Below, one piece after another: positions 2,628-61,853 of a DNA stretch of 64,000 nucleotides. The position numbers and the translations under genes were made by a program. Position 1 is the stretch's first letter, and every line of letters starts with the position of its first letter. Origin of the DNA: Paraspadella gotoi. Taxonomy: Eukaryota; Animalia; Chaetognatha. The DNA lies in assembly GCA_051294375.1 (NCBI GenBank), contig CM119264.1:5935621-5999620 (forward strand), written 5' to 3'. Under the pieces are notes generated by a model. The model did no database searches. It had not been told where the DNA came from and saw only the letters and a program-made list of their open reading frames with translations.

Positions 2628-5600
2628 TTAATCGCTTTCCGAATGTTCGTGAACCTTCAACACCTGAAACAGAATAGAAATCAGTCATTTTCGTACTAAC
2701 TGATATCTATTTCAACAATACGCCTTACCTTTCCCATGGCGATCGTCTTGCCTTCGTCCCTCAAAGTGAATCTCCCCATCTGCGGAAAATCCTTGAAGGC
2801 TTCGATGCAGATGACGCCGCCCGAGACTTCGAACTATAGGAGGAGATTTCAAAGGGTAAGTCCATCTTCTTGGAACACTGTCTCGGCAAGCTCATCTGAT
2901 CACACTGAAAAGTTTCACCTGTACATTGGCTACGCTGCCTTGCTTGATAAAGCGCGGACGAACTTTTCCTTTCTCCACTTTTTCGCCTTAGGGAAATAAG
3001 GGAAACAATTAAGGGTAAATATTAACATTAAAAGCCTGAGTACTAACGACTGGCTCACCCGTCTTGGGATCGATTGTTGAAACCAAGGCTCGAATCTCCA
3101 CCTCCTCCGCGGCCGCGTTGATGTGCATCACCGCCTTGAAACCCGAGCAGATGATCGACTTGTACTCAAGAATCCGAACCTGAAAATTCATTAATTCATT
3201 CAATGGAGTTGAAAATTTAGTAATAATAAATAAATGTAATGCTCTTCAAAAAGTAGTACAGGAAACTACAGAAACCAGAGCGTTAGTTTAAAATAAAATT
3301 ACTCACCTGCGCGACGAATCGATTGCCGACTTTACAGGGATCCTTCGGATCACAAAGAACGAATCCAGGTGACACATCTTCCTCTTCTATGTTCTTCAAT
3401 TTCAACTTGACGTTGTCGCCCGCTACAGCGCTGTCCGTCTGGAATCATATATTTAATCATTAAATTGATCCGTTAATAGTCAAAGCGAGAGTTGTCACAA
3501 TTAAAGCGACAGTTACCAAAAACTCACCTCCTCCTCATCAGACCAAATCTGCATGACTTCAACGCTGGCTTTGTTGGGCATCATGAGGATCGTTTGTCCC
3601 TTTTCCAAAGAACCAGATTCGATCTTCCCCATCACAATAGTCCCCATGTCCCGGTATCTACAACGAAACAAAATAAAAAAACTGGTTAGAGACAAATTAT
3701 GACAACTTTAGTTGGAAAAAAATTCAGGGATTATAAGAAAAAGGGGTAAAGTAGAAATTTTCCCTTAGATCACCTGTCGATAATGGGCATTCTCAGAGAC
3801 TTGTCCATCCCCATCCTTTCAACGGCGGGCAAGTTGTCCAAATACTCGAGGAGGCACGGGCCGGAATACCAGTTACAGAACTTAGGCCCAGGAGGTTCTT
3901 TGAGAAAGGCTCCCGTTAGACCTTGTGGAAAACGAAGAGAAACGAAAGAACGTAGAGAAACGAAAATAGTTTTCGGTAAAAAACATAGCCAAGACTTAAA
4001 AAGTAATAATCAAAACTCCGGCAACTAACAACTCACCAGAACAAGGGATGAATTGTACATCACGTTTCGGATTGAAGCCGCACTTTTTCAAAAACGGCGT
4101 AAGCTGATCTTTCACTTCATCATATCGGGACTAAAAGTCAGACATTCGAATTAATTGCACGGTAAAATTAATAACGTTAATAAAATAAACCGAATGCAAG
4201 AACGAAAAAAGAGTTGCGTTTTTTTTTTACCTGATCCCATTCCACAGTGGGGTCATCCATCTTGTTGATCAAAACGACCAGCTTGTTGACTCCCGCGGTT
4301 TTAGCAAGCATAGTGTGCTCCTTAGTTTGACCCCCGCGCTCAAAACCAGTTTCGAACTCGCCCCGCCTGTTCGAGAAGGTAAACAAAGAGCTTATTGCAG
4401 TTCTTGAAATAAGCGAGAAAAGATAACGGGTGTTTTCCCTCACCTGGCGGAAATGACGAGGACGGCGACGTCGGCCTGCGCCGTTCCCGCGATCATATTG
4501 GGGACGAAACTCTTGTGACCCGGAGCGTCGAGGATCGTGAAATGCTTCTTTTCCGTTTGGAAGAACGCGCGGCCGCACTCCACCTGGAGGTCGCGAAAGG
4601 GAACACGATAATGACGAAAGACGCAGTAGTAACTAAAAAGCTAATCCAATCAAGTTGACCAACCGTTTTCCCCTTGTCCCGTTCCTCTTGATTCGTGTCC
4701 AGCGCCCAGGACAAGTACCAAGTTTCTCGATTCTTCTCTTTGGCTTCACGTTCGTACTTTTCCAGCGTCCGTTTGTCCACCATTCCCGTGAGGAACATAA
4801 TGTGGCCGCCAATTGTAGATTTCCCTGAAAGAAGGTGGCAAGAGTTAGAAAAGAGTAGAATATAAGAAAATAGACGATCATCACTGACCAGCATCGACGT
4901 GACCGATGAAGATGACGTTGAGGTGATCCATCCTCGGTCCCTCCGACTTTTTCCTCTCCTTTTCCTTTTTTCTCTCCATCTTCACCTTCTTCGATGAGTC
5001 GTCCTCTTCGTCGTCCTGGCGAAGATAAGATTCGTTTGTACTACATTTTGAAATACTACACATATATTAGTTGTACCAATTTTATATGTTTATGCAATAA
5101 AACTACTCGACTAAAAAACCAAATTACTTTCGCTGATTTTATTCGCCTAAAAAACTGAAAAAAAAATACGAACAAAATTTCCCAACGAGTCGCCAACTGG
5201 AATAAAAAGAAACCCGGTTGCCAGTCGCTCACGCTCCCGGTCTCGAGCAAAAATGTTTTGGCTTTTTAATTAAGAAAAAAATAACCGGAAGCAAAAAATG
5301 ACCGAAAGGAAAATAAAAAGATCAATTGTGGAAAACAAACATTTTTTAAAACTTTTTATTAATTACTGCAACGAAGAGTAAAAGAAAAGTAAATTTGCAC
5401 TGATACACAAAAAATATGTACATATATGAATAAAAAAATGTTAAAAGCATAAGGATCGTCGCAATCGCATAAGAAAAATCTGGATTGACGACAAATTTTG
5501 ATACTAAAAAAATCAAATTTGAGAAAAAGAAAAAAAAATTATAAACAAAGAAAAATTATATTTTGCGATTTGAGAAAAAAAAATTTATAAACAGAAAGTA

Positions 5601-7453
5601 CCAAGAAAAATTAAAGTTACAGTTTCTGAAAACAAAAAAAAATTCATTGTCAAAAAGTAAACTGATCAGTAAACGCAGCCCCTGAAAAAAAAACGTAATA
5701 AAAACCCGATGTTGCGATACAAAATGATAACATGCATGAATGCGATGCCTAATTTTACGAGTTCAATCCTAATTCAATTTTTTTTTGTAATAAAAATGCA
5801 GAGAAAGAGAGAAAAAAAGAAAAATCAAAAGGCAGCAGCAGAAAAGATAAAAAAAGAAAGTGCCCCTGCAGAGCCAGCTGCAGAGAAAGAAATCAAAATG
5901 CAGCAGCAGAAGCAGCAGGAGAAAAGAAAGAAAAGAAAGTGCCCCTGCAGAGTCAGCTGGAGAGAAAGAAATCAAAATGCAGCAGCAGAAGCAGCAGGAG
6001 AAAAGAGATAAAAAGAATAAGCCCCTGCAGAGCCAACTGCAGACTCGTTTTTTTCCCTTTGTCTATGAATCAGTGACTAGGAAAAAGAGAGAGGGAGAGA
6101 GACATGTAATTAAAAGAGAAAAGAGAGAGAGAAAGAAATATAAATAAAAGAGAAAATTTGTTTGTTTTGATAAAACGTAAACAAAACATATTTAATAACT
6201 GTCCAGACTCAATTTTAAGCAAATCGATGATGAGAAGTTGTATATAAATTTTCAGCTTCATACACCAAATTTAATCATAAAAAAGGTGATCTATAATTTG
6301 GAACGCCGCCGCCGACAACGACGACGACAACGACGCCACTTATGCGCAAAAGCGTTACAATATCGTCGGAAACGCTAAGCGATTGCGACGATAAAAAGTA
6401 AAGAGTCGGGACACTGACTTGATTCTCAGAAACGGCGCCCGATCCGGCGCCAGAACCGGCGCCCTCCTCCTCCCAACTCTCCGGTGCGAGAGGCGTGGGG
6501 CGAGCGACGTCGCCCGTGGGTGAGACGGCGGAAGATGAGGAGGCGGAGGAGTCGGTGACGCAGACGGCGTCATCTGAGAAGCGGATGAAGGAGATGAATA
6601 AAGCGAAAGAGTAAAAAGTCAAAATCCGTCCAGGACCCACCGTTTCGGCTGACGTCGCCGTTGAGTTCGAAATTGTGGTCCGGTCGCGTCGTCGCCGGAG
6701 TTGGCTGAGACGCGTCGCCGCCGCTTGCCGTTGCTGCTGATGGAAGAAGAATTTAGGTACAACCTTTTTTTTTCTCAATTGTCTGATTATGTAGGCATTA
6801 AAGAAATTATCGAATCAAACATACTATACATTGTATATAGAGGATGTGCGGTTTACATATTATATAATATATACTATATATGTAAACTTACCCGCTCGGG
6901 TATTTTCTGACTGTAGAGTAGACGGTCCATTGTGAGCGGGAGAATTGGCGGTATCTCGAGACTCTGGATGACTTGGCGGGGACGACGACGACGACGAAGA
7001 AGACGGGGCTTGGCGGTTCGGAGAGGATCGAGGCGGGATCCCGGACATCAGATTTGGAGGAGGTTGATTAGGAGCAGGCGGTGGCATGTGATTCGGCCGA
7101 TGAACCGGCGAGATACCTTGAGAAAGCAGGATGTACTTAAAATGCGAGGAATGGGACGAAAATATCGCTACAAACAGAAAACAGACCTGGGGGTGTGTTG
7201 GCTGCAAACAAAGGCACGAACGCGGGAGCGTTTGCATTAAACGTGAAGGCAGGAGCGTTGGGGTTGAGGCCGCCGCCGCCGGCAGCCCTCGGTCCGCTGC
7301 TGCAAGGTGATGAGAAGAAAAATAAACCTTTTCTATATTTTACATTTCCGATGAATATTAACCTCACTATTCTTGTCGCCACCTGTGAAAGGGAGATGCC
7401 GTGCCGGAACCGGCGGAGCTGTCATCGTCCCAATTGTCGGGCGTGTGATTCAT
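2628..7453 (-). CDS. GSPT1: Eukaryotic peptide chain release factor 3 (eRF3/GSPT), multi-exon
   Basis: Spliced exons give [11 protein letters not shown]..., tandem PAM2-like [20 protein letters not shown]-domain [28 protein letters not shown], and C-terminal [15 protein letters not shown]|[14 protein letters not shown] at 7453, TAA at 2628-2630; GT-AG introns. Confidence 0.96.
5860..6045. repeat. Intronic tandem repeat of about 80 bp, purine/CAG-rich
   Basis: GCCCCTGCAGAG..AGCTG..GAGAAAGAAATCAAAATGCAGCAGCAGAAGCAGCAGGAGAAAAG occurs twice plus a partial third copy inside an eRF3 intron. CTGCAGAGC also occurs in the dispersed repeat at about 10875 and 51905. Confidence 0.8.
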
Positions 7454-7739: not shown

Positions 7740-9559
7740 CTACGTAAGGACTTCGGCGACCGCGAAAGAATGACCAAAACCCGCGCCGATTTTGACCCAT
7801 CGAATTAATGAAGGTTTGATTGGCTTTCGTTCGTCACCTTCTCCGGCTTTATCTTCGACGTTAAACCAATTAACTCTACAGGGAGCGATGCGGTTCTCCT
7901 CGTCTCCGGCGCCGCACATTCCGTGCTCGTTCCAACCGAAGGAAAAGAGACTCCCTCGGGCCGTGAGGACCATCGAGTGTTCGGAGCCGCATTGAACTCG
8001 CGTCGCGAAGTCTCCGCCCGAATTCTCATCGCCGGGAAGCTGGACACGCGTCGGACGAGGATCGAAGTCGCCGGTGGAATTTCTCCCGAGTTGACCATAA
8101 CAGTTGCGACCCCAACTGATAATAAAGAAAGTGCTTTTTTCGAAATGAAAAAATGAAATCCAGGAATGAAAATAATCAACCTATAAATCTCCCCTTTGCT
8201 CGTCCTGAGCAAAAGGTGCGTCCAGCCCGACGAAACTTCCTCAACGTCGCCGAACGGGCAACCAGAGAGGATCGTTGGCTCCTCGGCTAACGCAGTGCGT
8301 CCAGGATCGAGCCCGAGTTGCCCGAATCTATTGCAGCCCCAAAGAACCACCAGCGCGCGTCGCCTGACTCCCGAGGCCGGCAAGAGCAGCCCAGAGTGAA
8401 AGCTTCCGGCAAAGAGTCGAGCCTCGGCCGAGACAGTCGCGGAAGAGTCTTCGGCGGCGAGGGCAGCGTCAACGACGTCCCGAACGCAACGAAACCCAAA
8501 GGCTTTTGCCGGCCGCCGCTCCGCCTCATCGGCGCCGCGTCCGAGTTGGCCGCGCCGACCGGCGCCGCACATCATAACGCAACCGGGACTGGTCACGACG
8601 AGAGAGTGGCGCAACCCAGCGGCGACGCTAACGACTTTTTCGATGGAACTCGATGTGCCAGAATGACGCTGGCATTGTGGAGTGACGTCGATCGGGCGAT
8701 CGGCCAATGAGATGCTGGAGGCGACGCCAAGTTGCCCAAAGGCGTTCGATCCGAAGGCGAATAACTTGCCGTCAACTGAAAATTTTTTCCCCTTCGTTAT
8801 GACCAATCAGTCAATTATTTTTTATCCTTGTTATGATTTCTTCCTTTACCCGAGACGGCAAGCGTGTGATCCCAACCGCAAGCGACGCTCACGATTTTCT
8901 GGCGGAAATTGGTTGTCGACAGCGAGAGGAAATTAGCGAGAGACTTCAAGGTCGTGGAATCCGACTCCACTGCCGCGACATATTCATCCGGCGTCTCTCG
9001 CTCCCCAGATTCTTCGGTTCGCGGAGTCGCCGCGTCTCCGGCAGAAGCGCCGGACTCAGAGGGAGTCGAACGCCTCCTCGACGATTCGCATCGGCTGCGT
9101 TGACGTTGTCTGGGCGATCAAGATCAAGTCGATCAGGCGGAGCGATGGTTACTTTAGGTACTACATGCTAGTCGATTCTAATATTTAGATTATAGTTCAA
9201 GCTTCTAACCATTTCAACTAAACTTGACGCGAACTCACCTTTTCTCGCTTTGACCCAATCCTAACTGGCCTCTGTCATTGAGACCGCACATCGCCAATGA
9301 GCCGTCGACGAGGATGACGAATGAGTGACCGCCTCCGCCACCAATCTCTGCCGCCGACGAGAGGCTACCGTTGGCGTCGTGCAGTCGGAACCGCTCCGGC
9401 GCCAGAACATCGTCGGTGTGAGCCTGGCCTAGTTGACCGTAACTGTTCGCCCCCTTGATTCGACGGGGATCACGTCAAGTCAAGAATTGGGCGAGCGCGC
9501 TTATGGAAGCGAATTCGAATCACACAACTCACCCAACTTAGGAAAATCTGTCCAGACAT
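7740..9559 (-). CDS. SERGEF: RCC1-repeat protein, secretion-regulating guanine nucleotide exchange factor (DelGEF)-like, multi-exon
   Basis: Exon 1 MSGQIFLSW spliced to GANSYGQLGQAHTDDVL (SERGEF-type N-terminus). Several RCC1 repeats follow (GGGGHSF, ACGWDHTL, AAGLRHSL, SSGWTHLL, GAGFGHSF). Stop at 7740-7742. Confidence 0.85.
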
Positions 9560-9834
9560 TTTTCTCTCCGTTTTTCTCCCCAGACTTGACCATAGCAAGA
9601 AAGTTTAATATTAAACTTATCCTAAATAAAAGCGAATAAAAAAGGACAAAAATAAAGCGGCGAAAAAAAAATAAAATCTTGACTATGATATGCAAAATGC
9701 TATATCGGTTTTAGGCGGGCAAGCCCCGAACTCCAAAAGCATAAATATTTTAAAGCAACTATTTAAGTGTAAGCACAAAATCGATATTATATTTTAGTAA
9801 TGCTTCAGAAACCTAGAATAAATTAAAAATCTTA

Positions 9835-11030
9835 AAAGTATCGTGATCTCGCCAGACGTTACTATCAAAGAAAATTAATGAAAACATCCGAAAAAAGACG
9901 AATGATTGATGAGATAACGAATTATAGATGTAATAGTAATTGATTGATTGATAAAATAGTAATTAATTGATGATATAATAGTAATTTAATTGATGTAATA
10001 ATAATTGATTAATTGATATAATAATAATTGAGTATAATAATAATTAATTGATATAATAATAATTTATTAATACAATGATAACCAATTATTGATGCAATGA
10101 TAACCAATTATTGATGCAATGATAACAAATGATTGATACAATGATACCATTAATGATACAATGATAATCATTCATTGATGCGATGATAGTCATTCATTGA
10201 TGCGATGATAGTCATTCATTGATGCGATGATAGTCATTCATTGATGCGATGATAATCATTATGATGCGATGATATCATTCATTGATGCGATGATAGTCAT
10301 TCATGATGCGATGATAGTCATTCATTGATGCGATGATAGTCATTCATTGATGCGATGATAGTCATTCATTGATGCGTATGTCATTATGATGCGATGATAG
10401 TCATTCATTGATGCGATGATAGTCATTCATGATGCGATGATAGTCATTCATGATGCGATGATAGTCATTCATTGATGCGATGATAATCATTCATTGATGC
10501 GATATATCATTCATTGACGCGATGATAGTCATTCATTGACGCGATGATATCATCATTGACGCGATGATAGTCATTCATTGACGCGATATGTCATCTTGAC
10601 GCGATGATAGTCATTAGCATATGTCATCATTGACGATGATAGTCATTCATTGACGCGATGATAGTCATTCATTGACGCGATGATATTCATTTATTGATGC
10701 GCGATAGTCATTCAGTTGCACGATAAGCATTCGTTGACACGATAAGCATTCGTTGACACGATAAGCATTCGTTGACGCGATGAGTCATTCATTGTAAATA
10801 AAATATGCGTGTATGAGTGAGAGAGAGAGGAAAATGAGAGAGAAAAAAAAGGAGAGAGAGAGAGAGAAGCTGGACAGCCGCTGCAGAGCTTATTAGAAGC
10901 TATATCTAAATTTTTAGCTTCCGATAGTTACACACTTTTACAATTTCCAGTGGTAAAAAAGCGTGACAACGATGATAACGGTCACAAAGAAGCAGAAACG
11001 ATCCAACATCACGCCATGACGGCCTTAGGC
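9835..11030. mobile_element. Dispersed modular repeat (DINE-1/Helentron-associated-like) containing a minisatellite
   Basis: Terminus AAGTAT..GTGATCTCGCCAGACGTTACTATCAAAGAAAATTAAT recurs at about 51095 and 59625. The module TTTAGCTTCC.AT.GTTACACACTTTTACAATTTCCA.TGGTAAAAAAGCGTGA recurs at about 52995, 60680 and 52110. Superfamily assignment is inference. Confidence 0.7.
10070..10795. repeat. 22-bp minisatellite array (ATAGTCATTCATTGATGCGATG)n
   Basis: Directly visible tandem units with sequence variants changing along the array. Confidence 0.95.
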
Positions 11031-11336: not shown

Positions 11337-13105
11337 TTATAACGCATATATGGCTTGAAAACTTCCCCATTCCGTTGATACCGTCTTCATCTCAACGTCA
11401 ACAAAGCCAGAATTTATCAACGCCTTTTGATAACGATCAGGGCTCGTTTGTGTTGTCGTGAGAAAGCCCTTTGAAATTGGTTCCTAATATCATGGAACAA
11501 ATTCAAAATGAACTCTTTTTTTACTGTACTTCTATTAAATTTCTACATGAGTATTTAACCATCAACCTAAAACTAATCTGATGCAACAAGAATAGGTTTT
11601 ACTACTCTGGATTGGCAACTGTATGATGCCCGGGGTGAGGCAACTCCCAACAGCTGGCGCTCAGTGCTTTGGACCTGCAGTGACCACCCAAGTGACTGGG
11701 GTGTTAATGCCGACATCATCACACTTAACCAGCGTGACCGTGAGGGTATTTAACCCAGAACTCACAGTTGGTGAACCAGTACTTAGCAGTCCAAGCCAAT
11801 GGGTTTCACCAAGCTCTACAGGAGGCAAATTTAGGATTCGCCACATCTAAAACCTAAAATTAATCTGATGCAACAAGACTAGGTTTTACAATTCTGGATT
11901 GACATAACTTTGTCCTAAAATTATAAAATAACAGAATACACCTCAGGACCAATACTAGACTGCAAATTTTTCATCTTTTTTACCGAGTTTAACACTATAG
12001 TACAAATTGTGCCCTACCAAGTGCTAATTTTTTGGTCACTTTTTGTTTCAAAATTCAACTATTAATTGCTAACAACTCTTAAAAAACTAAAAAATTGAGG
12101 TTTTTTAAGCTAAATGAAGTGAAATAGTAGACTCCCGGGATAGTAGCTCCACATCGGCCGACTGTCGGTTTTAAACCGCCTGGACGGTCCTCACGCGCGC
12201 ACACACTAACAAATGTAAACATAATTTTTGCTTTGAGTATTTATGGTTTTGATTCGTAGTACATGTTATTATGACTTTTTCTAATTAACTTATCGCTATA
12301 CAGCAAACCTTAAGCCCGTTCAAGTTGAGGGCGGCCAACATCAGGCCACCTGGCTTCAATATCCTGTTCATTTCCATTGCTCCATTCAAATACTAGGCCA
12401 AAAGTAGAAGCAATTCACATGAAATATTCGGTCAAATAAGTTGTCATGAAATTCGTTTTATCAACACTAAAAAGAATTACCGGCAAAGTGAGATATAGGT
12501 AGGAAGGAAATTGAGATGTATAAAGGAAACAATATCTCCTCGCGATAACGCTGGTAATTTGTATTACAGAAGGCAAAATTAAAATATTGTCATGCTGCTT
12601 TATTTTTAAAAAAGTTACAAGAATTTTAATTAATAAATTACTGATAAAATGTAGTATATAGATTATATATTTTGGCTACCTGTGATTTGAAATTTTTAAT
12701 CTTCCCTGTCTTAATTTCCGAAGAAACTAATTTGGAAGCGTCTTGGATCATTTTAGTCGAGACATCAATTCCATAAACTTCACCAGAGTCAACGAACTTA
12801 AATGACTCCTTTAGACCATGGCCGGGTCCAAATCCAACCTCTAAAACTCGGTGATGACCCTTGCAAGACCAAAAGGTTGTAGTTTCCAAAAAAACGTCTC
12901 CAAAAATTTATATGCTTGCTTGTTATTTCCTATTGTTATTATTACCTACCTCAATTCCTAATAATTCGACAGCGCTTATGGTCATTTTCCTATTTCTTTT
13001 TGATAAAATATGAGCAATCATCAACCCTAAAGGGGAGCGTGTTGGATGTCCTAAATTCTTTTGGACACTCTTTGCAAACACTTTTGGTATCCATGAGTAA
13101 GACAT
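11337..13105 (-). CDS. Class I SAM-dependent methyltransferase (type 11, YdaC-like); apparent frameshifts (pseudogene or assembly error)
   Basis: Exons MSYSWIPKVFAK..., VLEVGFGPG (motif I), YGIDVS, FDRIFHVNCFYFW, RILKPGG, and last exon PDRYQKALINSGFVDVEMK...FQAIYAL* (TAA 11337-11339). Continuity needs single-base corrections in homopolymers near 12450, 12390 and probably 12690. Confidence 0.75.
11615..11820 (-). mobile_element. tRNA-derived SINE-like element
   Basis: Minus strand has A-box-like TGGCTTGGACTGCTAAG, degenerate B-box GGTTAAATAC, and a 3' tail CACTGAG...GGGCATCA..GTTGCCA shared with elements at 22.0 and 34.0 kb. Confidence 0.55.
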
Positions 13106-19277: not shown

Positions 19278-19475
19278 TCATCCGGAATCCCTGGCTTCGG
19301 CAAGCTGCGACAAAACTGTCACGGCCGTGGCGACGTCGCCGTGAAATTCTTCGATGACCATCAAAACGGTGGCGCGGTCCAACTTTCCCTCGAAAGCGCG
19401 AATCGCATCGTCGATGTCCGGTTCGTCCGGCAGAGAAACGTCATTATTAGAATTCGAAGCCTCGTTGGAGGTCAT
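19278..19475 (-). CDS. 65-aa protein consisting of a CUE/UBA-like ubiquitin-binding domain
   Basis: AFEGKLDRATVLMVIEEFHGDVATAVTVLSQL fits the CUE pattern. Composition is GC-rich like neighbouring exons, and TTTTAG lies 12 nt upstream of the ATG. Confidence 0.6.
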   Translation of the reverse strand: MTSNEASNSNNDVSLPDEPDIDDAIRAFEGKLDRATVLMVIEEFHGDVATAVTVLSQLAEARDSG

Positions 19476-23365: not shown

Positions 23366-23646
23366 TTTTTTGGTCGTTGTTGTCGTTTTCCCAGCCTTCC
23401 TCTTCGATCTCCCGACCTTTCTCATCCTCGTTTTTCTCAATTTAAATTTCTTTGGCCACAGAAAAGAAAATTATCATTTTTTTTGAGAATGGTCTAAATG
23501 AATTTTAATGGAGAACGAACCATTTCTTTTGAAGCGATAAAAACAAATACAAGCACGTGACAAAAGTAATGTAAGAACAAAGGGAATGAATATTACAAAA
23601 TAACAGACGACTGCTCCCGGCCGCCATTAATTATTTTTTTTCATTT

Positions 23647-35012: not shown

Positions 35013-35015
35013 AAC

Positions 35016-48082: not shown

Positions 48083-51000
48083 TTAAGATTTGTTTGTCAT
48101 ATGCGGGGGCGGCGTCCCCGACGCCGGAGTCCCACTCTGCATGGCGGCCATGATCGCTGGATTCTGCTGGGCTACCGAAGTAGCGGAAATGTTTTGGCCC
48201 GTATTGGAAGCAGCGCCAGGAACCGCGGCACTTCCTGGGACCCAACCTCCTGGAGGTCCCTGTGGTCGCGCGGGGAAAGGTTGGCCCGGAGAACCTTGGG
48301 CGCCGGTTGTATTGGGATGAGTCGGAGGCGCGTTTCCGGTTTGCTGATTCGGGACGCCACTGGGAATGTTCCCTCCGGGCGCAGCGGCGTTCGAGGCAGA
48401 TCCTTGAGCGGAAGTTGAGGCACCCGCCCCAGAAGCGCCGCCAGGTTGAGCGGCGGGAGGGGCTCCTGGGAACAGTTCAAAAAAGATGAAAAACGAAATA
48501 TACAATTCTAAGCCTTTTGTAGCAGTATAAGTTTAGCGTGGGGGCGGGTTGACCCACAGAATCAAAACCTTGCGTCTGTGGAGCCAGGTTCTGCATTGCC
48601 GCTTGCCGTGCTCTGAATTCGGCGGCTCTCAGCTGCTCCATGTGAAAGTGTTGACGTTCGCGCATGAGCTCTAATCGCTGGTATTCGAGGGCCTCGCGTT
48701 CGCGGTCCATGATGGCCTCGAGTTCCTCAAAGTGACGCAGTTTGATCTCCAACTTTTTCATCTGCGTTTCGACCAAAAGCGCGACCAAAGATTTGATCTT
48801 TCGCTCCTCCATGGCCGCCAAGTGCTTCGCCTACGAGAAGTGACGTCACGAATTCGTTCGAGAAAAAATAAATAATTATCAAATACAATATTAGATTAAG
48901 TATAAACTCTTGCGATGGATATATTCTCTAAGGTAATTTGGCCCGACCTTAACAGCAGCCGCGGCTAGGGCGGCGGCGGCAGCAGCGGCTATTCCGCCCT
49001 CCTTTACATCGTCGGCAGACTTTTCCTTCTCCTCGGGCTTTTTCTCCGTCTCTTCTCCCGTGGCCTCGGTTGTTTTGTCCTCAGCCTTGTCCTTGTCCTT
49101 TGCGCCTTCAGGATCCGGCTCCGTGCCGGCAATGCCGCTGCTGGACAGACCGTAGGCGGGGTCGTATTTTCCGCCGGGATTTTCCGCCGCCGCGGTTTCC
49201 ACGTTTTTCACGTGGGCTTCAAGTAGAGCGTTGGGAACCTGGAAGCGGGGATGAGATGGTCGACAAACGTCACAACTGATAAACCAACCACGGGACACAA
49301 ATTTCTTATCAAACCTCGTCCTTCATCTGACAAAACTCCTCGAGAGCTGACTTGGCGGCGGCAGAGGCGATTCGAGGATCCACGACCGAAGCCAGAAAAG
49401 CCACCGTAGACATGACGGGGTTGCCTGCGGAGTGTCAAACATCAAGAATCAAACACAACCCAAATCCAAAGTAAAAGCGCCAATTAGAAAATTAAGTGGG
49501 TACCTTGTTTGGAGAATGGCAAGGGTTGATAACTGAGTGGACCGAGACCTCCGGCGCCCGAATTGGAACTGGATTCCCCGACGCCGTCCCACTCTAAATA
49601 GGGATCCTCGATAGGCAGTCGCAGAAAATGGAGAATGCATTCGTCTTGAGTTCGCGACCCGACGTGCTCGCAGACTTTGTTCCAGTCGTCCTTGAACAGT
49701 TCCAATCCCTCCATGAGCAAAAGGGTCTCTTGGTCAGTCCACTCTCTGGTTTCAGGGAAAAATATTTCAGAGTAGCGACAGGAAACGTAACTTGAGAAGA
49801 GAAAAAGGTGGCGAACCTGGAACTGACGGATTCCTTGCTCTTTAGATCCGCATATTTCTTGTTGTACTCGTCAGCCTTCAGCCCGAAGTTGTCCAAAGCT
49901 TTCGAAGCGGCAACTTCTTTACTCTCCTTCTCCTCGGCCTCTTTTTCTTTGTCAGCCTTGTCCATGTCTAAAACCTTCTTCGCAGCCGAAGGCTGAAAGA
50001 AATAAGTTGTATATAAATAAGTTTGAGCAAACAATGTCGGATCTGCCCATGATAATTTAGCTAAAAAATTATCCATGTTACATTACATGTTTATTGAGCC
50101 CTTGCCTAAGATTTTTATAGATTAGGAATAATTGATGATGATGATTATGATGATGATAATGATTTCAGAAGAGAATATACAAATAATGATTGTGAAGAAA
50201 ATTTCCTTTCATGGACGCTCATTAAGTTTACCTTCTGGAAAAAGTGAAACTCTACAAATTTAGTATGCTATGATTCAGCATATGTTAGATGCATATAGTA
50301 CATTTTACTACTAAAACTATTTTTAAACTGACTGCAGCTCGTAAGTAGGGGTAGCCGCACTCAATGGGGTGAGTCAAAAATTTTAGAGCGAGTACAAGCT
50401 CAAACGAAAATTTATACATTTTTAAGTATACTTTCAATGGACAAAAAATTTCTTATATGGCTCTATAGTATAGTGCTCAATGACACACTTTCCTACCAAC
50501 ACACAAAATTTCATCTCAATCTATCCATCCAATGATGAGTAATTAAAGTTTAATGCTAAGGTGGGACGGACGGACAGACATTTTTTTGCATCAAGTTTAT
50601 ATTCTGACATGAACCAATTGAGTGACCGACAAGATTGTGGGGGTGGACCGACGGACGGACAAAGTGGATTATAAGAGACGAAATCTGCTGATAAGCAGAT
50701 CTGACTAAAATTAAGGCGCGATTCAAAAATCCAACCGATGAGTTAAAAAATGGAACAGGAAAAAAAGTAAAATGAAAAAAAAAACCCGAAACATGCCTGC
50801 GCGGTTTTAGCTGGGGCCAGGGGCTGCAATCCAGAGGGTGTATCGGCGAGGACGTGGAAATGAGAAGTCGGCGGCGGCCCCATCGGTGTGGGGCGGCTGT
50901 CTGGGTCAACTTGATAGTTGATGAGGCCCCACTGCTCCAGAAAAGCGTGGACTCTCATAATGGCGCAAACGTCGCCGGCCAAATTACGTCGACATGCCGT

Positions 51001-54000
51001 GACCGTGAGATACTCGCCAGGGTTGAGCCTGATGAAATTAAAATCGTCCGAAATGGGAATTTATAAAGACTTCATTCTTCCAATACCGATTTAAAGTAAA
51101 AATAAAGTGAAATTATAAATGATAAATATAAAAATTAAATAAAAAAATCTTAAAGTATATAGTGATCTCGCCAGACGTTACTATCAAAGAAAATTAATAA
51201 AAAAATAAAAAAAACAAAAAAACAAATGATTGATGCGATAACAAATTATTGGTAATTAATTAATTCAAATTAATAAATTAATTAATTAGGCAATTCATTA
51301 ATTAATTTGATCCAAAATATTTGTTTTGATGGATTGATTGACTGATTAATTGATTAATTAACTGATTAATTATTTGATTAATTAATACATCTTGCATTTA
51401 CATTTAATATAAAATGAAAAAGATGCATAATCAATTAGTGAAACAGGTTTTTTTTTGGTTTTTTCCATTTAAACTCATTTCCACTCGCACGATTCCATCG
51501 AAACTTCATATCCAGCTCAATCCCACACTTCCCTACCCACACACAAAATTTCATTCCATTCCATCCATCTAATCACGAGCAATTGGAGTTTTCTGCTAAG
51601 GTGGGACGGACGGACAGAAAGACGGACGAACGGATAGATGGACATCGTTTTTTTTTGCATAACTTATCAAAATTCGATGTTCTGACATGATATAAGTGAA
51701 TGCCCGACAAGATTGAAGGGGAGGACCGACGGACCGACAAAGTGAATTATAGAGTCGAGATCTGCTGATAAGCAGATCCGACAAAAAATTAATAATAATT
51801 AATTAATTAATTATCTGATCAGCTGCTTACCGCTAATGAACGTGGGCAGATCCGGCATTGTTTGCTCAAACTTATTAATAAATAAAATCAGAGAAAGAGA
51901 GAAGTCCAGCCGCTGCAGAGCTCAACTCCTTTTTGAGAGCAACATATAATTAAAAGAAATAAAAAAAAAAATTATATAATACATGCTAATTTGCATATTG
52001 TAGTTAGTCATAATGTGAAGAAAATTCATCAAAAAATACTTGAATCCATATGAAACATGTCATTTTAAAAGATATTAACGATGAAGAGCGATATCTAAAT
52101 TTTGAGCTTACTACAAATACACACTTTTACAATTTCAAATTGTAAACAATTGTAAAAAGTGTGATAACGACGACGACGTCATTAAACTATTATCTTACCA
52201 AAGACGGGCCTAGGACCGTCTGGCGAGGTAAAAACTTCATACATCTATATTTTTTGGGAAAAAAATAGGCAGAAATTTTGCATTTTATCGCAGAATACCT
52301 GTAAGTATCGATCATGAAATTTCTATATGCCATATATATTTCCGGGTTCTTAGATTTGTTCTTCATGTTAAAAAACTCGGGCAGCCCTCGTTTTTCGATG
52401 CAGTGGATGGCGTTGTAATCGAACCAGGAAGCGTAGGAGGGGATGATGATGTGGTGCGTCTGCTCAGTCACGTTATCTTCGCCTTTAACAGGGGGACGGA
52501 AACATTATAAAAACTCAAACCGAAATCATAAAAGCCCCAGTGGGCTTTTTAGGTCCTGTCATCGCCACAACCCTTGTTCCCCCCCCCTCCTCCACCGAAA
52601 AACCTTCTTTCTTCTCTTCCTTTTTCTCGGCGCCGTGAGTGCTGCCCTCTCCGTCCAACTCGCCGTCGGCGTCGGAGCTGCCGTCGACGTTGCCGTCCTC
52701 GGCATCGAGGTCGGTCATCGACGCCCCCTTGAGAGGATGAAACTCGGAATCCAAGACGCGCCCTTTCGAACCTGCGCGAAAAACAGAGGTAAAGTATCGA
52801 TTTAATCATAGTGCCGATCGAGCGTTTCCAACCTAAAAATTATACAAGATATTTAATTCCATGCATTCATTATTATTTTAATGAAATAAAATCTAAAGAA
52901 TTTGATGATGATAACCATTTTTTGGTACAGTTTCATCTTCTTTGTCGCAAATGGCGATTTTTGAAACAAAAGGTGCTATTAAAATGGCGCAATTTTAGCT
53001 TCCTATGGTTACACACTTTTACAATTTCCAATGGTAAAAAAGCGTGATGACGATGACGACGGCGACGGTCACAAAGAAGCAGAAGCGAATCAACATCACG
53101 CCAAGTCGGGCGGGATAAAAATGGTCATCACCGATTCACCATCTAATTTTTCAGACCATATTACAGTAAAATAATTATGAATGGAATTTAATATCTTTTT
53201 TTGTTATCTTTGAAGGCTCTAATACCCAATGGGCCGGGCTTCGGCATCGGGACTTCAGTGATGTTAGGCTCTGGGGTCGGATCGTCCATTCCCGCCGTCG
53301 CGTCTTCGTCTTCTGCATCCTTCAATTTTTTTTTCTTTTCTAAAACGTAATAATAATAATAATAATTTTAAAAAAGATTATAAATTACGTATGTCAAATT
53401 ATTTGTGTGTACTCGAGGCAATGCGGTATTTTCTGACCTTTAACTGCCGGAGTGACAGACTTAGTTTTATCCTCTTTGCCCTTCTTTTGGTTTTTGTTCT
53501 TCCTGTCGGGCGAAGGCGAACGCGATCTCTTTCGCTTCTTGACGGACTTGTCGGGCTTCGATTCGCTTCCGTCGTGGCTCAGTTCGTTGTCGCTCATGTA
53601 TAAATCCTCGGACGCGTATACGGATCTAAACCGACGATTATTCTGCTTTCGAGCACTTTCTTTTTTTTTTTTAAATTTTCTCTCCCTCTTTTTTTACCTC
53701 CTCCTCTTCCTCTTTCCTCCCGAATCCTCATCGTCGACCTCGTAATCCTCCTCGTTGACCCACTCGTTGAACTTATCCGTGTCGGAGGCCCATTCCGCGT
53801 AGACTTCCCAGGGTCCGTCTCGGGAGGGCGGCATCTCGGGATCGACCATGCCGGCCACGCCCCCGGCCGGGGACACCCATGTATCGTAGCTGTCGGGCCA
53901 GCCTACCCAGTGGAGGAGGGCTCCGGCTCCGTTTTCCCGCTTCATCACGGGTCGGACGAGATCTTCCTCCCAGGACGTTTTTCGCGTACCGTGGATCACG

Positions 54001-54788
54001 TGCGTCGCTTCCGATTCGTTTGAAGCGAAGTTACCTTTTTCATTTCAAGGAAGTGGGCATGGTTTTGCGAAATAAAATTAATATTTTTTTTATAGAATTG
54101 TGAAATACAAAAAATAACTAAAACCTTGGTGTCGTTTGACAATGTCTTTCAACTTTTCGCGCAATACTTTATCCAATTCTTGACGAATGAATACCGTGGG
54201 CAACACGTAAAATTTGTTCTGAGAAATGAAGGAAGGGGAAAAGGGAAGGTAAACGACAGCTCCTTTCATTTCCGTCTGCCCTTCTTCCAAGAAGTTTACC
54301 GTGGTGAGAGCCTTTTCGATTTCGATAAAGATTGACACGTTTCTATCCATTCGACTCGGGTTTTGAAAGTCGAAGCGACGCCAACCCTGCTCGCTCTTGA
54401 ACTTGAAAGCGGTGGCCAGGATGTGGCAGAGAGCCCCGTTAGTTTTGAAATCCATGAAGAACCTCATTGGGAGACGGGTCAGCGCGGGCTTGGAAACCTT
54501 TGAGATTTGAGGGAGAAACATAAAGTAACTTACTTTTTACTTAATTACTGTCATCCGGTCAGTGAATAATTAAATCTCGCTCACCCCTTTGCCAAAGTTA
54601 TCCTCTTGAAACTGAACGAGTTGATCGACCAAGACGGAGAGACTTTTGTTGGTCGGAGGATCGGCCTGGACATGCTTCTTGCAATTTTTCTGCAGCCAGA
54701 GTCGGATCGGTTCGAACTGGGCCACCGTTTCCGGTGACTCGAAGAATTTGTGGTTTGGACCGCCATCTTTCTTTCGAACAATCGACAT
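48083..54788 (-). CDS. SMARCC2: SWI/SNF core subunit SMARCC1/2 (BAF155/170, moira), multi-exon
   Basis: [12 protein letters not shown], chromo-like [70 protein letters not shown], coiled coil [27 protein letters not shown]. Confidence 0.97.
50480..50710. repeat. Dispersed repeat module with (GGAC)n microsatellite, copy 1
   Basis: ACACTTCCTACC.ACACACAAAATTTCAT...GCTAAGGTGGGACGGACGGACAGA...GATCTGCTGATAAGCAGATC, also at 51470-51785 and 55860-56150. Confidence 0.85.
51095..52190. mobile_element. Dispersed modular DINE-1/Helentron-like repeat in a SMARCC intron
   Basis: Starts with the same GTGATCTCGCCAGACGTTACTATC terminus as 9835, followed by ATTA-rich units, the GGAC microsatellite module, CAGCCGCTGCAGAGCT and the ACACACTTTTACAATTTC module. 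Confidence 0.7.
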
Positions 54789-55859
54789 TTTTTTATGTTT
54801 TACAAAATCGGGCTCGATCGCATAAGCAACAAAAAACTCCTGGTACACAGTTCACTACAGGATTCCTGCTAGCTAATAAAAACAAACTAAGGGAAAAAAA
54901 ATGAACCAGAAAAACTACAAGATGCGTCTATTACAAACTTCAGTTTTTCAAAGTTATCGAAAAAGACCCAGGCAGATTAAACAATCAGTTATTTAAATAA
55001 ACAATGTTTTAAAGGCCAATCGACCCTAAATTAAGAAGATTTTAATTAGGGTGACCATCGGAGTGCAGTTTAAACACTTGATAGCTGTCCAATGGTGGAG
55101 CTTCGATGTAAGGGCGCCCAGTTTTTTTGCGAACCTTCATTAAAGAACAAGAAATTTTCGCCTTTTTTTCTTAGTTAAGATAAAAACGAAAAGTATAGCA
55201 AAATAAAAGGAGATTAATGGATACCTGTTGCATTTTCCAAACGCGTAAAATTGATTTTGTTCTGTATTTACACTCGTAATAATCATCGAAGTATTCCTGG
55301 CAAAAGTACCTTCCCTTTACGGTTCCGGAGGCGCTAAGACCTTAGAAGAAACTCGACCAGTTCGAAGTTATCGTAATTAACCTTGAAAAGGTTGCCATAA
55401 GAACTCACATTTCATCCACCGATAATAGAATCTGACGCATTCATTATAATACTCGCTTCGACAGCCCTCCAAGAAGTCTCCGGACGTCTGGAGTAGGGTT
55501 TCGCCCTGCGACATTTTTTACTTCGAAACTTTCATCTAACTAAAATAAAGACACATGATGCACGACGATGATATGGATCAAGCGATTAATTTCATTTTGA
55601 AATAAAATAAAAAACGTATACGACAATGAAAAATGGCGTGGCGTAACAGTCATAATAAAAATTCACTGTTCGATATTATCATATTTGATTGGATTTTGTA
55701 AAACGTTTTATTTTTATATACCTATATAAAAAATATAAATGCAAAATCTTATTTTGTTTTTAGATATGATTAATTATTAATTTTACTAATTTTACCCATT
55801 AATTTAATGAGTAATTGGCGTTCAAAATCAAATAGTGAAATAGAATTTTTTGTTTTTTT

Positions 55860-56991: not shown

Positions 56992-59900
56992 TCAAGATCT
57001 CTGATCTTCTGGACAGTCGGGTTGTGCCCGAGGATGAGCTTTCTTGAAAGCCTCCAGCTCTTCGCAGGCCGAGTTGACTTTCATCAGAGTCGGGAACGAA
57101 GACAAGTCGACGTTGAACCGCCTCGCGTTGTAAATCTAGTTGGAATACCAGAGTATTTGTAAGAGATGATTATTTAATATGATCTTAAATGAGATTGAAT
57201 CTCTCAATCTCATTTACATTCCATTTACATTCCAACATTCCATCAAGTAAGATATTAATGAACACTGAACCTCTTGGTACCTACTTATATGCTGATCTTA
57301 TCTCAGGCATACATACCCTCGTATATATTCAGTAGAGCGTTCAAAGATAACAAAATATAAGATATTTAATTTCATTCATTATTGTTTTAATGTAATAAGG
57401 TCTGAAGAATTCGATGATGATAACCATTTTTTGGTATAGTTTTATCTTCCTTGTCGCCAATGACGATTTTTGAGGCATATAAGGTGCTATTAAAATGGCG
57501 CAACCACTGTAGAGTATGAGAAACTAAAATTATTAAAATTTTATAAAAGTTATTATTAGCTTATATAATATGAAAATAAGACCCATAAAAATATTCGGTA
57601 AGTTTATTTACAAATTTTATATTTTATTAACAGCTTGTTAGCTATATTTATTAATAATTAGTAATTAAAAATAAGCTAAAGTGAAAAAATAAATATTTTG
57701 AAATTTTAAAACCGGATTTGAATTCCTTGCAAAAAGTTGATATAAGAAAGTATAATCTATTTTAACAAATTCTTTCATTAAGTTGGTTAAAAATATTAAA
57801 AACTATGATATTTGTTTAATTTTACCATTTTTGGCTTAAAATTATAGGTTTTCTAAATTTTGACTAACTTAATGACATAATTTTTTAATAAAAATTATAT
57901 TTTCTTATATCAACTTTTTGCAAGGAATGCGAATCCGGGATAACAAATTTTAAATTATTATTTTTTAACTTTAACCTAATTTTTATTTATAATTATTAAT
58001 AAATATAGCTAACTAACTTTTAATAAAACATAAAATTGAGAAATATTTTTACCAAAATATTTTTATAGGTCTTTATTTTTATATTTCAAAAGCTCATGTA
58101 AATTTTAAAAAATTAATAATTTGAATTATCATATCTATAATGTTTGCCCTATTTATTAGCATTTTATATACATTAAAAATCGTTATTTCCGACAAGAAAG
58201 ATGAAATTATACAAAAAATTGGTCATCACCATCGAATTCTTCAGACCTTATTACAGTAAAATAACTATGAATGGAATTTAATTGCTTATATTTTGTTATA
58301 TTTGAATGCTCTAATATTCAGGTATGATGCTGATCTTATCTCAGGCATACATACCCTCGTATATATTCAGGTATATGTATTATGTAATATAATGATTAAT
58401 GAATTTATATCCCTGAAGTTGTACGTCTATTTATTTGGCTTTGTCATGTCATGTCACTGGCGTATATTTTATTTTTCAATTTTAGCATTAGCCCATATTT
58501 ATATAGTACTCAACATAGAAAATGTCAAAATTTTAAAATGGTTTTTTCTTATTTTTGAAAAGCAGATTCGAATTCCTCATGAAAAGTTAATAAAAAGAAA
58601 AATAACTCTTTTTAGAAAATTTTTTTCATTAAGTGGGTCAAGAAAATAAAAAACTGTTATAGCTAACCTAAAATTAAATTTTAGTATAAATAAAAAATAT
58701 ATTTTTTAAATTTTTTAGCTAACTTAATGAAATAATTTTTTCTTAAGACTTATATTTTCTTTTATCAACTTTTTATGAGGAATTCGAATCTGCTTTTAAA
58801 CTAAGAAAAAACTATTTTAAAATTTTAACTTTTTTATGGTAAGTACTATGAGCTAATGCAAAAATTGAGAAATTAAAAAACTATTCGAATTTTGATCTGC
58901 AACTTTCACTACGCCTCAATCCTCATAGAACTCCAAAAATACGTGATTTATAAACTAATTAACGTAATGTCCAACTACAGTCTGACAGACACACAAACTG
59001 AAAAGTCTGATGTAGCGTCACTCAAAACCATTGTTCGAACGCCTTTTCCCAAACACCTGTGGGATCAAGCAGAGATCAGCGATGGTGACTTCGTCTCCGA
59101 CGCAAAACTTTCCCGCTGTTCCAAGGACCATCTCTTCAACTGCACGGAGGCCGGCGTCGATGACGTCATGAGCGAACGCCATCTTCTTCTCGTCGCCGAT
59201 TCGCTGCAACACCGACAGGTTTTGCAAAGGTTGGATTCCGGAGGCGATGGTCTCGGCGATAGAGCGCGCGCGGGCCTTCGCTACAGGATCGGCCGGAAGC
59301 AGCGAGGGCTTGGGGTGAGAATCTTCCAAAAATTCGATGATGGCCAAGGATTGAGTCAGAGTCACCCCATCATAGACGAGGACCGGAACCTGAGAGAAGA
59401 AGAGGTTATGGAATAAGTGCGTCCAACAACACATAAATCGTTATTAAAAGCCATAAACCGAAAAACGTAAAATAACTACGTCACACCTGTTTCATTGGAT
59501 TTAGAGATTTGAATTCTTCATTGTGTTGCTGCCCACCTTCTTTGACAAGATGTACGGCTTCGGTGTCGTAGTCAATACCTTTGAGAGACAACGCAATGCG
59601 AACTCGCCAACTAAATAACGGGGAAGTATAGTGATCTCGCCACAAGTTACTATCAAAGAAAATTAATAAAAAAATCCGGAAAAAAAAACCCGAATGATTG
59701 ATCCGATAACGAATTATTGATGTAATAGTAATTGATTGATATAATAATAATTGATTATTGATGCAATTGGAGACAATGATAACCAAATATTGATGCGATG
59801 ATAACCAAATATTAATGCGATGAAAACAAAAAATTGATGCGATGAGTCATTCATCGTAAATAAAACAAATGCGTGTATGAGTGAGAGAGAAAAAGAGATA

Positions 59901-60841
59901 TATAATTAGGGACCAACTCCGGAGATAATAGACTATTAGCAAATTTTTTTTAATTGTCTTGACTAAATATTTAAGCAATCATTTTCAAAAAAAATTTACA
60001 TTATACGTCTTGATTAATACATTAAATATTATTCGTCTTTTTTCTCATAAGATTTTTTTTTTAAATCTTAAAATTTTTTAATGGATTCTGATAGGGCATT
60101 AAAAGTTAAACAAGATATATAATTATAGCTTTTAAAAATCCCTACGTTTTCCAAGTGAAAATATAAAAAAATTAAAATCATTAAAAGATGATGATTGTGA
60201 CAACTTTCTACGGTTTTTCTTATTTTTGACTCACTTATAAAATTTTTTTTTTAAATTATACTTGGTGTAGACAAATTTTCATGAGCTATCTGAATTTGGT
60301 CTTAAAATCTAAAAATTCTAAAAAAAATTTTTTGCTTTTCTATCTATAAATAAATATTAAAAAATTAATTATTTGGGTATAGAGCCATATGAGAAATGTT
60401 TTGTCCATTGAAAGTTTTTTTAAAAATGTATAAATTTTCGTATGTAATCATTCTAAATTTTGGACTCAATTGTGCGTATGGAAGAATTAATTTGAGGGGT
60501 AAGATTCAAGTCTGAACTCTGTATAGTACTATAAACTAATTTACATATAGCAGTAGGTACAATATCTAATTTGCATATTGCAGTAAATCATAATGAAAAT
60601 GAAATTCAAACAAAAAATACTTGAATCGATATGATGTGATTTTAAAATATCTTGATATTGAGAAGCTATATCGAAATTTTTAGCTTCCTATGGTTATAAA
60701 TTTTTATAATTTCCAATGGCAAAAAAAGCGTGACGACGACAATGGCACAAAGAAGCAAATCTAAAATCTTGAGAAAAAAAAACTTGCACACCTGCAGCTG
60801 CTCCTCCAGTAGGAGTAAAGCTTGGGTTTGATCTTCGACAT
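56992..60841 (-). CDS. GSTZ1: Glutathione S-transferase zeta / maleylacetoacetate isomerase, four exons
   Basis: [16 protein letters not shown]|[15 protein letters not shown]...LNPMKQ|VPVL...SGIQPLQNL...[10 protein letters not shown]|[15 protein letters not shown]...[15 protein letters not shown]. Confidence 0.96.
57333..58313. mobile_element. Non-autonomous hAT-type element in a GSTZ1 intron, with an internal foldback
   Basis: TAGAGC...GCTCTA termini, imperfect TIRs of about 90 bp, and an 8-bp TSD ATATTCAG (57325-57332 and 58314-58321). A related shorter copy lies at about 52810-53221. Confidence 0.85.
58555..58800. repeat. AT-rich foldback related to the internal part of 57333-58313
   Basis: AGCAGATTCGAATTCCTCATGAAAAGTT.ATAAA pairs with TTTATCAACTTTTTATGAGGAATTCGAATCTGCT. 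Confidence 0.7.
59622..59900. mobile_element. Short copy of the 9835 modular repeat with few minisatellite units
   Basis: Same terminus, the same GATGCGATGATAACCAAATATT-type units, and the same end GCGATGAGTCATTCAT.GTAAATAAAA..TGCGTGTATGAGTGAGAGAG. Confidence 0.8.
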
Positions 60842-61207
60842 GGCGTGGTCGTGCAAAATGCAACTAAATAACTGAGCTTGTGATTGAAAAGAAATCGAAA
60901 TAACGTTAATTAAAATGTTAAAAGTTGATCGGTGATCGAACATAAAAGACTTTTTTTAACACGATGAAAAATAAATAACTGTATCTAGTTGTTCAGGATA
61001 CTGAAGAGTAGAGAGCTGAAATTTCTAGGATACTGTTTAAAAACGAAACTAATTTAAAAAAAAGTTTTTTTTAATCTTGGTTGGAAGGCAACTTTTGGAA
61101 AGACTAGCAGGAAGTAGAAAGGGAAATATTCTGAAAAAAATATTGGCGCGATGAAGTGAATGACGAGAAAGCGAGGATCGTGAGGTTCGAGATGAAAAAA
61201 ATAATTG

Positions 61208-61853
61208 TCAAAAGCAAATGGTGTCGTCGTTGTCGTACTTCCGATTCGCCTTACGAATTCTCTTTCCCTGGGACTCGGCCTTAGGCGGCGACAATGATGG
61301 ACCGGAATCGGTAATTCCGCCGCCGAAAAAACGCTTTTTGACGCTCTTAGGCAGCGAGGCGTTCGGAAGATAAAGGGCGCGCCTCGTGGTCGTCTCGCGG
61401 GCGCCATCGGCGAGGGAAGCTACTTCGACCTCTTCGGTTTGTATCTTTCCGAGATATCGACCCACGTAGTTGCTTCCGTCGTCCCACTTGACGAAAACTA
61501 AAAAATGAACGAGATTTCAATTATGATAATTATTATCCCAATTTTTTTGGAAAAAAAAAGGGACCTGCCTTTGGCGTTGACAGGAGGATCGTAGTCCGGA
61601 CCGCAGGGAAAGTTTTGAATGTCGGAAGGGTAAACGTCTCGACTAAGTGTGCCGTCTTCGAAGTAGATCTTATAAAAGAAGGTGGGTCGAAAAGAAACGA
61701 TTCTCGCTAAGAAATACTTGTTTCCTTTGAAGGGCGCTACGACGGTTTGGCCGACGAAGACGTCTTCAGCCGTAGGTCGGCCTGCTTCGTCCGCCTCGTC
61801 GTCAACGTCAATATCTTTCAGCGTTTCTTCTGAAGTCGAGTTGAAGTCGCGCT
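61208..61853 (-). CDS. KDM4: 3' exons of a KDM4/JMJD2 histone demethylase (hybrid double Tudor domain); remainder lies upstream
   Basis: VGQTVVAPFKGNKYF...FYKIYFEDGTLSRDVYPSDI...|VFVKWDDG...Y.G.Y...LPKSVKKRF matches the KDM4 double-Tudor layout. Catalytic exons not seen. Confidence 0.8.

Follow-up and report, generated by a model that had tools for sequence, protein, structure and literature searches.

The stretch of DNA analysed here (the window: 64,000 nucleotides of contig CM119264.1, numbered from its first letter) carries 21 recognisable genes between positions 2628 and 61851, and all of them lie on the minus strand. Pfam scans of the minus-strand open reading frames (ORFs) revealed 19 different gene families, and two further genes were recognised by other support, namely a KDM4-type double Tudor end, by a structure match, and a 65-amino-acid CUE-like ORF, by a match in a relative. 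A preliminary description of this DNA had reported a run of 20 minus-strand genes at 2628–61853, free of tandem paralogues, and proposed it as a candidate long polycistronic array. The run itself was confirmed and gained one gene, and its limits correspond to the final nucleotide of the stop codon of eRF3 (2628) and the start of the Tudor exon (61851). As had also been proposed, this is not an array of tandem paralogues, since each gene belongs to a different Pfam family and neighbouring genes are not homologous. The best reading of the run, and in our judgement a likely one, is about eight co-oriented small units and single genes, not one giant transcription unit.

Transcription proceeds from high to low coordinates, with the KDM4-like end first and the eRF3-type GTPase last. 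The two-exon 3' end of the KDM4-like gene (61208–61851) has no Pfam match, and its hybrid double Tudor domain matches the Tudor structures of KDM4C, KDM4B and KDM4A (best 2xdp_A, KDM4C, E = 6e-16); its other parts are to be sought upstream, past 61.9 kb or beyond the end of the window. It is followed by GSTZ1, a maleylacetoacetate isomerase-type GST with GST_N family matches (56992–60841), whose four exons enclose repeat-bearing introns of 1.2 and 1.9 kb, and by a small NDUFS5-like mitochondrial protein (55042–55514; Pfam Ndufs5, E = 7.7e-5, above the curated cut-off). The SMARCC gene, encoding a SWI/SNF subunit of the BAF155/170 type (48083–54788; SWIRM, SWIRM-assoc_1/2/3 and Myb), is interrupted by many short introns. 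An RFC3-type replication factor C subunit (46016–47723; RFC_C, E = 3.5e-23) begins 359 nt past the SMARCC stop, and a proline-rich single-pass membrane protein with a low-density lipoprotein receptor class A (LDLa) domain (44373–45589; Ldl_recept_a, E = 6.9e-5) begins 426 nt past the RFC3 stop. Two genes follow behind wider gaps: a single-exon ZnT zinc transporter of the cation efflux family (41369–43021; Cation_efflux and ZT_dimer), preceded by 1351 nt, and an OS9/PRKCSH-like lectin of the endoplasmic reticulum (37895–39535; PRKCSH, E = 1.4e-18), preceded by 1833 nt.

After a further gap of 2016 nt comes TMEM11, a mitochondrial morphogenesis regulator (35016–35878; Mito_morph_reg, E = 1e-36), which is the first gene of a dicistron. 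A spacer of only 3 nt, read from the sequence as TGA gtt ATG (35013–35015), separates it from the second gene, a NEK12-like protein kinase (32775–35012) that matches the full Pkinase profile at E = 2.7e-62 and is 60–69% identical to its relatives. The two-exon gene for the MADS-box transcription factor MEF2 (30886–32393; SRF-TF, E = 7e-24) starts 381 nt past the kinase stop. A single-exon sulfatase (28509–30176; Sulfatase, E = 1e-37), which from motifs judged by eye looks like an iduronate-2-sulfatase, starts 709 nt past the MEF2 stop, and the single-exon TMEM33 gene (27545–28297; TMEM33_Pom33, E = 3e-84) lies 211 nt past that of the sulfatase. Behind a gap of about 2 kb, the Tim44-like MRPL45 gene (24142–25547; Tim44, E = 2e-15), whose start is possibly further upstream, is followed after 189 nt by ERH, the enhancer of rudimentary (23647–23952; ER, E = 3e-44).

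Between ERH and the next gene, a moderately GC-rich stretch (21317–23627) has ORFs on both strands and no recognisable gene: it has no Pfam match, the gene-model scores described below are 93 on the minus and 80 on the plus strand, and its largest minus-strand ORF gave a single weak low-complexity match against 1.84 billion representative proteins. Metaxin (19697–21143; Tom37/GST_C_6) has six exons, supported by Pfam and the gene model. The CUE-like small ORF (65 amino acids; 19278–19475) lies 221 nt past the metaxin stop and 301 nt before the ATG of TBCD, the tubulin-specific chaperone D, a single exon of 1192 codons (15398–18976) with three TBCD Pfam families and homologues. An AT-rich class I S-adenosylmethionine methyltransferase is represented by its core exons only (12309–12907; Methyltransf_25/11/31, E about 1e-6). 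An RCC1-repeat protein (7740–9593; RCC1 and WD40_RLD) precedes by 286 nt the translation termination GTPase of the eRF3/GSPT type (2628–7453; GTP_EFTU, D2, D3 and GTP-eEF1A_C), which has about 17 exons and an N-terminus that, as read from the sequence, is PAM2-like. Within the eRF3 gene, three tandem units of 79–80 nt are found at 5832–6043, between the N-terminal exons and the GTPase exons, and about 360 nt downstream of its stop there is an A44 tract on the plus strand (2227–2270; T44 on the gene strand).

When the 150 longest stop-to-stop ORFs of the plus strand (at least 66 amino acids) were searched, a single marginal Pfam match resulted (DUF3899, E = 0.0076). The earlier observation that no convincing plus-strand gene exists is therefore upheld, with the exception of 21.3–23.6 kb, to which no strand is assignable. 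The two strands were also compared with a gene-model scorer, a 3-periodic Markov model combined with splice-site matrices and trained on seven confirmed ORFs. It was used only for exon boundaries and for the minus-versus-plus comparison; it merged neighbouring genes and scored antisense sequence high, because exons differ from spacers here mainly in GC content. The minus-strand score was 1.3 to 2.6 times the plus-strand score in every Pfam-supported gene region that could be scored, and the score was zero on both strands in all of the long spacers. For the AT-rich regions of the methyltransferase and NDUFS5, the score was close to zero on either strand, which shows that AT-rich genes can escape it. 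A tRNA scan found no tRNA genes in the window, and no Rfam family matched at its gathering score, nor was anything credible found at E values up to 0.1.

The composition of the window alternates between GC-rich blocks (45–57% GC) and AT-rich spacers (24–35% GC). The introns are ordinary GT-AG introns, mostly of 55–130 nt (about 80 nt), with the consensus CAG|GTAAGT ... TTTCAG|G. Intron density is uneven: TBCD, the sulfatase, ZnT and TMEM33 have none, and eRF3 and SMARCC each have about 17–20 short ones.

The spacing of the genes is bimodal. Gaps were taken as stop-to-ATG distances, with starts and stops set by locating the terminal peptides, and 17 junctions could be measured in this way. Eleven of them are short (3, 189, 211, 221, 253, 286, 301, 359, 366, 381 and 426 nt), and the remaining six are long (709, 1351, 1477, 1833, 1997 and 2016 nt), AT-rich and in places occupied by repeats. 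Neighbours in a chaetognath-type operon resolved by spliced-leader (SL) trans-splicing share a strand, as do all 21 of the 21 genes here. In Paraspadella gotoi, where trans-splicing affects about half of the genes and 18% of genes belong to operons (1,470 validated), an operon was defined by gaps of less than 250 bp and the longest contains nine genes (PMC12460157); among our distances, which are stop-to-ATG only, the 3-nt junction clearly falls within that limit. In the 100 nt that precede the ATGs, acceptor-like sites show a modest enrichment (median score 5.1 versus 3.6, p = 0.002). This enrichment fits widespread trans-splicing without separating a model of one unit from a model of several, and the sites could also belong to introns in 5' untranslated regions (UTRs).

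The strongest case of a short gap is the TMEM11/kinase pair. The kinase domain aligns from position 1 of the Pfam profile at residue 11, and the TMEM11 C-terminus agrees with its relatives; with both protein ends thus verified, the 3-nt spacer is secure. Only six proteins related to TMEM11 were detectable, with 63–75% identity, in JGI, ENA and Logan assemblies, and most of their contigs come from plankton sampled by Tara Oceans, as metatranscriptomes or metagenomes. In three of these relatives, TMEM11 and the kinase are found on one RNA-derived contig, with spacers of 145 nt (L041/L042, Tara metatranscriptome), 381 nt (L046/L047, Tara metatranscriptome) and 237 nt (L045, from the Logan-assembled run SRR17229686). 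The full-length kinase ORFs of L041 and L046 are uninterrupted at the GEFK|A junction, where the window and the genomic contig L050 have an intron, which indicates that these RNAs had been cis-spliced. In the genomic DNA of another species (L050–L053, Tara metagenome), the two genes are likewise adjacent, with a spacer of 145 nt. On sequence evidence, the adjacency of TMEM11 and the kinase is therefore conserved in at least four chaetognath species.

The assignment of these relatives to the chaetognaths follows from the SLs that their transcripts carry, and the window itself is very probably chaetognath DNA as well. Contig L054, whose TMEM11 protein is 74% identical to that of the window, starts with an adaptor-like ACATGG followed by GGAAGCTAAAATTCTTTTATTTGCTTAATTAAA, and these 33 nt are exactly the SL1 of Spadella cephaloptera and Flaccisagitta enflata (Table 3 in PMC2481426). 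Two other contigs have only the 3' portion of a leader at their 5' ends, L041 the final 11 nt of SL1 and L045 the final 9 nt of SL2. Trans-splicing is thus seen on the TMEM11 mRNAs of the closest relatives, and would by extension apply to the species of the window. In addition, the 3' end of L041 (2588–2606), 464 nt past the kinase stop, repeats 18 nt of the 3' part of SL2 in sense orientation; this piece may come from the following trans-spliced mRNA, joined to the contig by chimeric assembly. A 16-nt motif common to the L048 leader and the L046 spacer was not found in the window.

A second pair of genes shares a contig in a relative. A counterpart of the CUE-like ORF (65–66 amino acids, 42% identical; L001:120–320) lies 120 nt upstream of TBCD on contig L001 of run ERR6349783. 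This contig is probably cDNA, since the run is numbered near ERR6349624/5, whose kinase contigs are intron-free. The CUE-like ORF matches no Pfam family; it may be a small protein that has escaped annotation, or a cistron conserved upstream of TBCD. Evidence of co-transcription in relatives thus comprises TMEM11 and the kinase in three species, and the CUE-like ORF and TBCD on L001. The TBCD protein itself has no close relative in annotated genomes: its identity is about 45% to the proteins of spiralians, deuterostomes and cnidarians, without distinction, and 56% to its nearest relative, a single Logan contig; in a neighbour-joining tree, the window and this contig fall inside the protostomes with weak support, and a metagenome scan with TBCD retrieved distant relatives only (33–60% identical over segments). 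A glass sponge (Hexactinellida) was considered as another source, given the compact genomes, numerous single-exon genes and known SL of that group; it was rejected in view of this tree and of the chaetognath leaders on the relatives' transcripts.

On this basis, the window is likely to be gene-dense chaetognath DNA in which 21 or 22 co-oriented genes would be distributed among about eight transcription units. Five of the units would be clusters that resemble operons and comprise between two and about six genes: KDM4-like and GSTZ; NDUFS5, SMARCC, RFC3 and the LDLa protein; TMEM11, the NEK12-like kinase and MEF2, possibly continuing to the sulfatase and TMEM33; MRPL45 and ERH through to metaxin, the CUE-like ORF and TBCD; and the RCC1-like protein and eRF3. 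The other three would be single genes (ZnT, the OS9-like lectin and the methyltransferase). In each cluster, RNA polymerase II would start from a promoter ahead of the first gene and generate a single precursor, and 3' end formation coupled to SL trans-splicing would convert this precursor into mRNAs, some of which would stay dicistronic. The AT-rich spacers of 0.7–2 kb would separate the units and most likely hold promoters of their own, and the common direction of the units would be due partly to the co-orientation that operons impose and partly to chance. Co-transcription of the window's own clusters, an SL on their downstream genes and promoters in the long spacers are the parts of this scheme that we infer, and trans-splicing as the way of resolving the clusters is assumed from the phylum. 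The operon idea of the preliminary description is thus retained for the short-gap clusters, most firmly for TMEM11 and the kinase (3 nt, with shared cDNA contigs in three relatives), whereas the notion of a single 60-kb polycistron found no support. Nor would the clusters be unusually long for an animal, as had been suggested: the six gaps of 0.7–2.0 kb divide the run into about eight units, none exceeding about six genes and all within the published maximum of nine.

Several observations weigh against this interpretation. Some of the short gaps contain neither AATAAA nor ATTAAA, and a search for 8-mers found no promoter motif common to the long spacers, with no more shared words than in shuffled controls. 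In the relatives' contigs, no SL stands directly before any downstream gene, and no SL-kinase junction was encountered. On contigs L048/L049, the kinase is preceded by a 219-nt leader that lacks an SL; the other contigs that bear the kinase are dicistronic. Finally, published chaetognath operons are depleted in developmental genes, which argues against an operonic MEF2 (PMC12460157). The preliminary description had included MEF2 in its polycistron; the one basis for this is the 381-nt gap behind the kinase, and the readable transcripts of the relatives stop short of MEF2. The position of this gene makes it possible to ask directly whether a developmental regulator may belong to an operon in chaetognaths.

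The missing SL on downstream genes would be expected if there were no operons here at all, that is, if the genome were merely compact and each gene had its own promoter in the 200–400 nt spacer or within the upstream gene, with co-orientation arising by chance or from constraints such as avoidance of transcriptional collision or replication direction. The 219-nt leader of L048/L049 could then mark an internal start, and, apart from the 3-nt spacer, the short gaps might in principle have room for a minimal promoter. However, 3 nt is too small for a terminator plus a promoter, dicistronic intron-free cDNAs of TMEM11 and the kinase exist in three species, with a 5' SL in two of them, and operons are documented in this phylum (PMC12460157, PMC2481426). 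Moreover, if genes were oriented independently, only about 0.005 runs of at least 22 genes would be expected per genome. We therefore consider an operon-free arrangement unlikely. A variant of the preferred scheme that is limited to pairs would treat TMEM11/kinase and CUE-like/TBCD as true dicistronic mRNAs, with the second ORF translated by termination-reinitiation or leaky scanning. The UGA-guu-AUG junction of the window would suit it, as would the cis-spliced contigs from metatranscriptomes and the Logan run whose first cistron is SL-capped (L041 and L045), the 120-nt spacer of L001 without AATAAA, and the failure of any SL-kinase junction to turn up. This variant is nevertheless rather doubtful, because reinitiation after an ORF of 190–205 codons is normally inefficient, de novo assemblies often join operon neighbours from rare precursor reads, and a spacer that varies from 3 to 381 nt across species retains no fixed stop-start geometry. 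The TMEM11/kinase pair provides a clean test case here, since its downstream cistron would be expressed either through trans-splicing inside the upstream ORF or through reinitiation.

At the other extreme, one or two very long polycistrons of the kinetoplastid kind might start upstream of the KDM4-like gene and run through 22 genes and their spacers, with individual mRNAs released by trans-splicing and polyadenylation. Such a reading would account for a same-strand run that is unbroken across all of the spacers and may continue past both window ends, and for the lack of a promoter motif common to the spacers. It also agrees with a weak excess of T over A on the minus strand that is maintained in all seven of the seven long spacers after trimming of 350 nt at each end (pooled +0.054, z = 4.2) and has the same sign as the skew of the short introns (+0.15). 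This spacer skew is only one third of the intron value, however, and could stem from T-rich UTRs. In two spacers (35879–37894 and 39536–41368), the excess of T turns into an excess of A in the third quarter (−0.28 and −0.12, respectively) and returns to +0.24 immediately upstream of the next gene; this reversal might mark a promoter or a nucleosome-free region, and an internal switch of this kind would suit a promoter. The bimodal gaps are what would be expected if only some of the junctions were internal to a unit, the published maximum is nine genes with gaps of less than 250 bp (PMC12460157), and beyond the kinase no further ORF is present in the next 0.46 kb of L041 or 1.2 kb of L046. Kinetoplastid directional clusters likewise comprise dozens of unrelated genes on one strand, but their spacers are uniformly short, and they have no gene-specific promoters and almost no introns; the window has bimodal spacers, six of them 0.7–2 kb long, repeats in the 9.6–15.4 kb gap, and GT-AG introns of about 80 nt. 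That a single directional unit covers most or all of the 60 kb, with more than 20 genes and MEF2 among them, is thus highly improbable. If true, such a unit would be more than twice as long as the longest operon reported in any animal, and chaetognaths would possess kinetoplastid-style directional clusters that an operon annotation based on gaps of less than 250 bp has missed.

The length of the run does not in itself call for such a unit. The preliminary description had put the probability of the run at 2 in a million, and this arithmetic is correct, but the unit of independence is not: a null model in which genes are oriented independently is unfit for a chaetognath, so the chance of the run must be taken on units. 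About eight units would share one direction with a probability of 2 x 0.5^8, or 0.8% per window (about 1 in 130), which corresponds to several windows per genome (about 950 windows) and is not rare genome-wide. In terms of genes, the expected number of runs of at least 22 rises to about 0.07 at a co-orientation of 0.57, the value derived from P. gotoi operon counts, and to several or even dozens at a co-orientation of at least 0.7, as in an operon-rich region. Strand-run statistics in operon-bearing genomes thus need to be based on transcription units and not on genes. The operon phenomenon is already established in chaetognaths, and nothing in the window requires a unit longer than those known.

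Among the known systems, chaetognath operons (Spadella RPS14-PCNA and those of P. gotoi) belong to the same phylum and likewise combine unrelated, mostly housekeeping genes on one strand, with spacers down to 3 nt. In Spadella RPS14-PCNA, the distance from the poly(A) site to the acceptor is also 3 nt (PMC2481426). The run of 21–22 genes in the window exceeds the nine-gene maximum of those operons, but it is interrupted by the spacers of 0.7–2 kb, and it differs from them in having the developmental factor MEF2 close behind the kinase. Operons of Caenorhabditis elegans are likewise clusters of unrelated genes (two to eight), and short stop-to-ATG distances are typical of them. In their SL1-type operons, which have no intercistronic space, the acceptor is situated in, or directly at, the 3' end of the preceding gene, where that of the TMEM11/kinase pair would also have to be. 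In contrast to C. elegans, chaetognaths have no operon-specific leader comparable to SL2 of the nematode (PMC12460157). The two operon systems probably arose independently. Tunicates (Ciona and Oikopleura) also have compact genomes and SL trans-splicing, and little if any sequence lies between the cistrons of their operons. However, they belong to another phylum with another leader, and their intercistronic gaps are a few tens of nucleotides, whereas most of the intra-cluster gaps in the window are 190–430 nt.

Repeats are dispersed through the longest introns of GSTZ and SMARCC and through the 9.6–15.4 kb gap, and a 22-nt satellite and inverted repeats also occur in these regions, which suggests transposon insertions and not genes. 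An 83-nt repeat occurs in four copies, all in one orientation (10898–10980, 52087–52169, 52979–53061 and 60664–60746). On the minus strand, three of the four copies include the opening 13 nt of SL1 (GGAAGCTAAAA(A)TT), in front of which about 50 nucleotides are conserved. A search of the window for SL RNA genes found nothing beyond this 13-nt match, and the repeat was rejected as such a gene, as it has no conserved donor or downstream part; it may descend from an SL gene, or have matched by chance. A 76-nt element with three copies that are 78–83% identical (9821–10780, 51140–51215 and 59609–59870) is found in one of the long spacers as well as within long introns of SMARCC and GSTZ. Two of the three copies run into arrays of the 22-nt satellite (CGATGATAGTCATTCATTGATG-like), and the element looks like the end of a transposon or of a miniature inverted-repeat transposable element (MITE). 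Inside the 1.9-kb GSTZ intron, a nest of inverted repeats at 57333–58818, with arms of 110–226 nt that are 74–84% complementary, looks like a foldback or MITE element.

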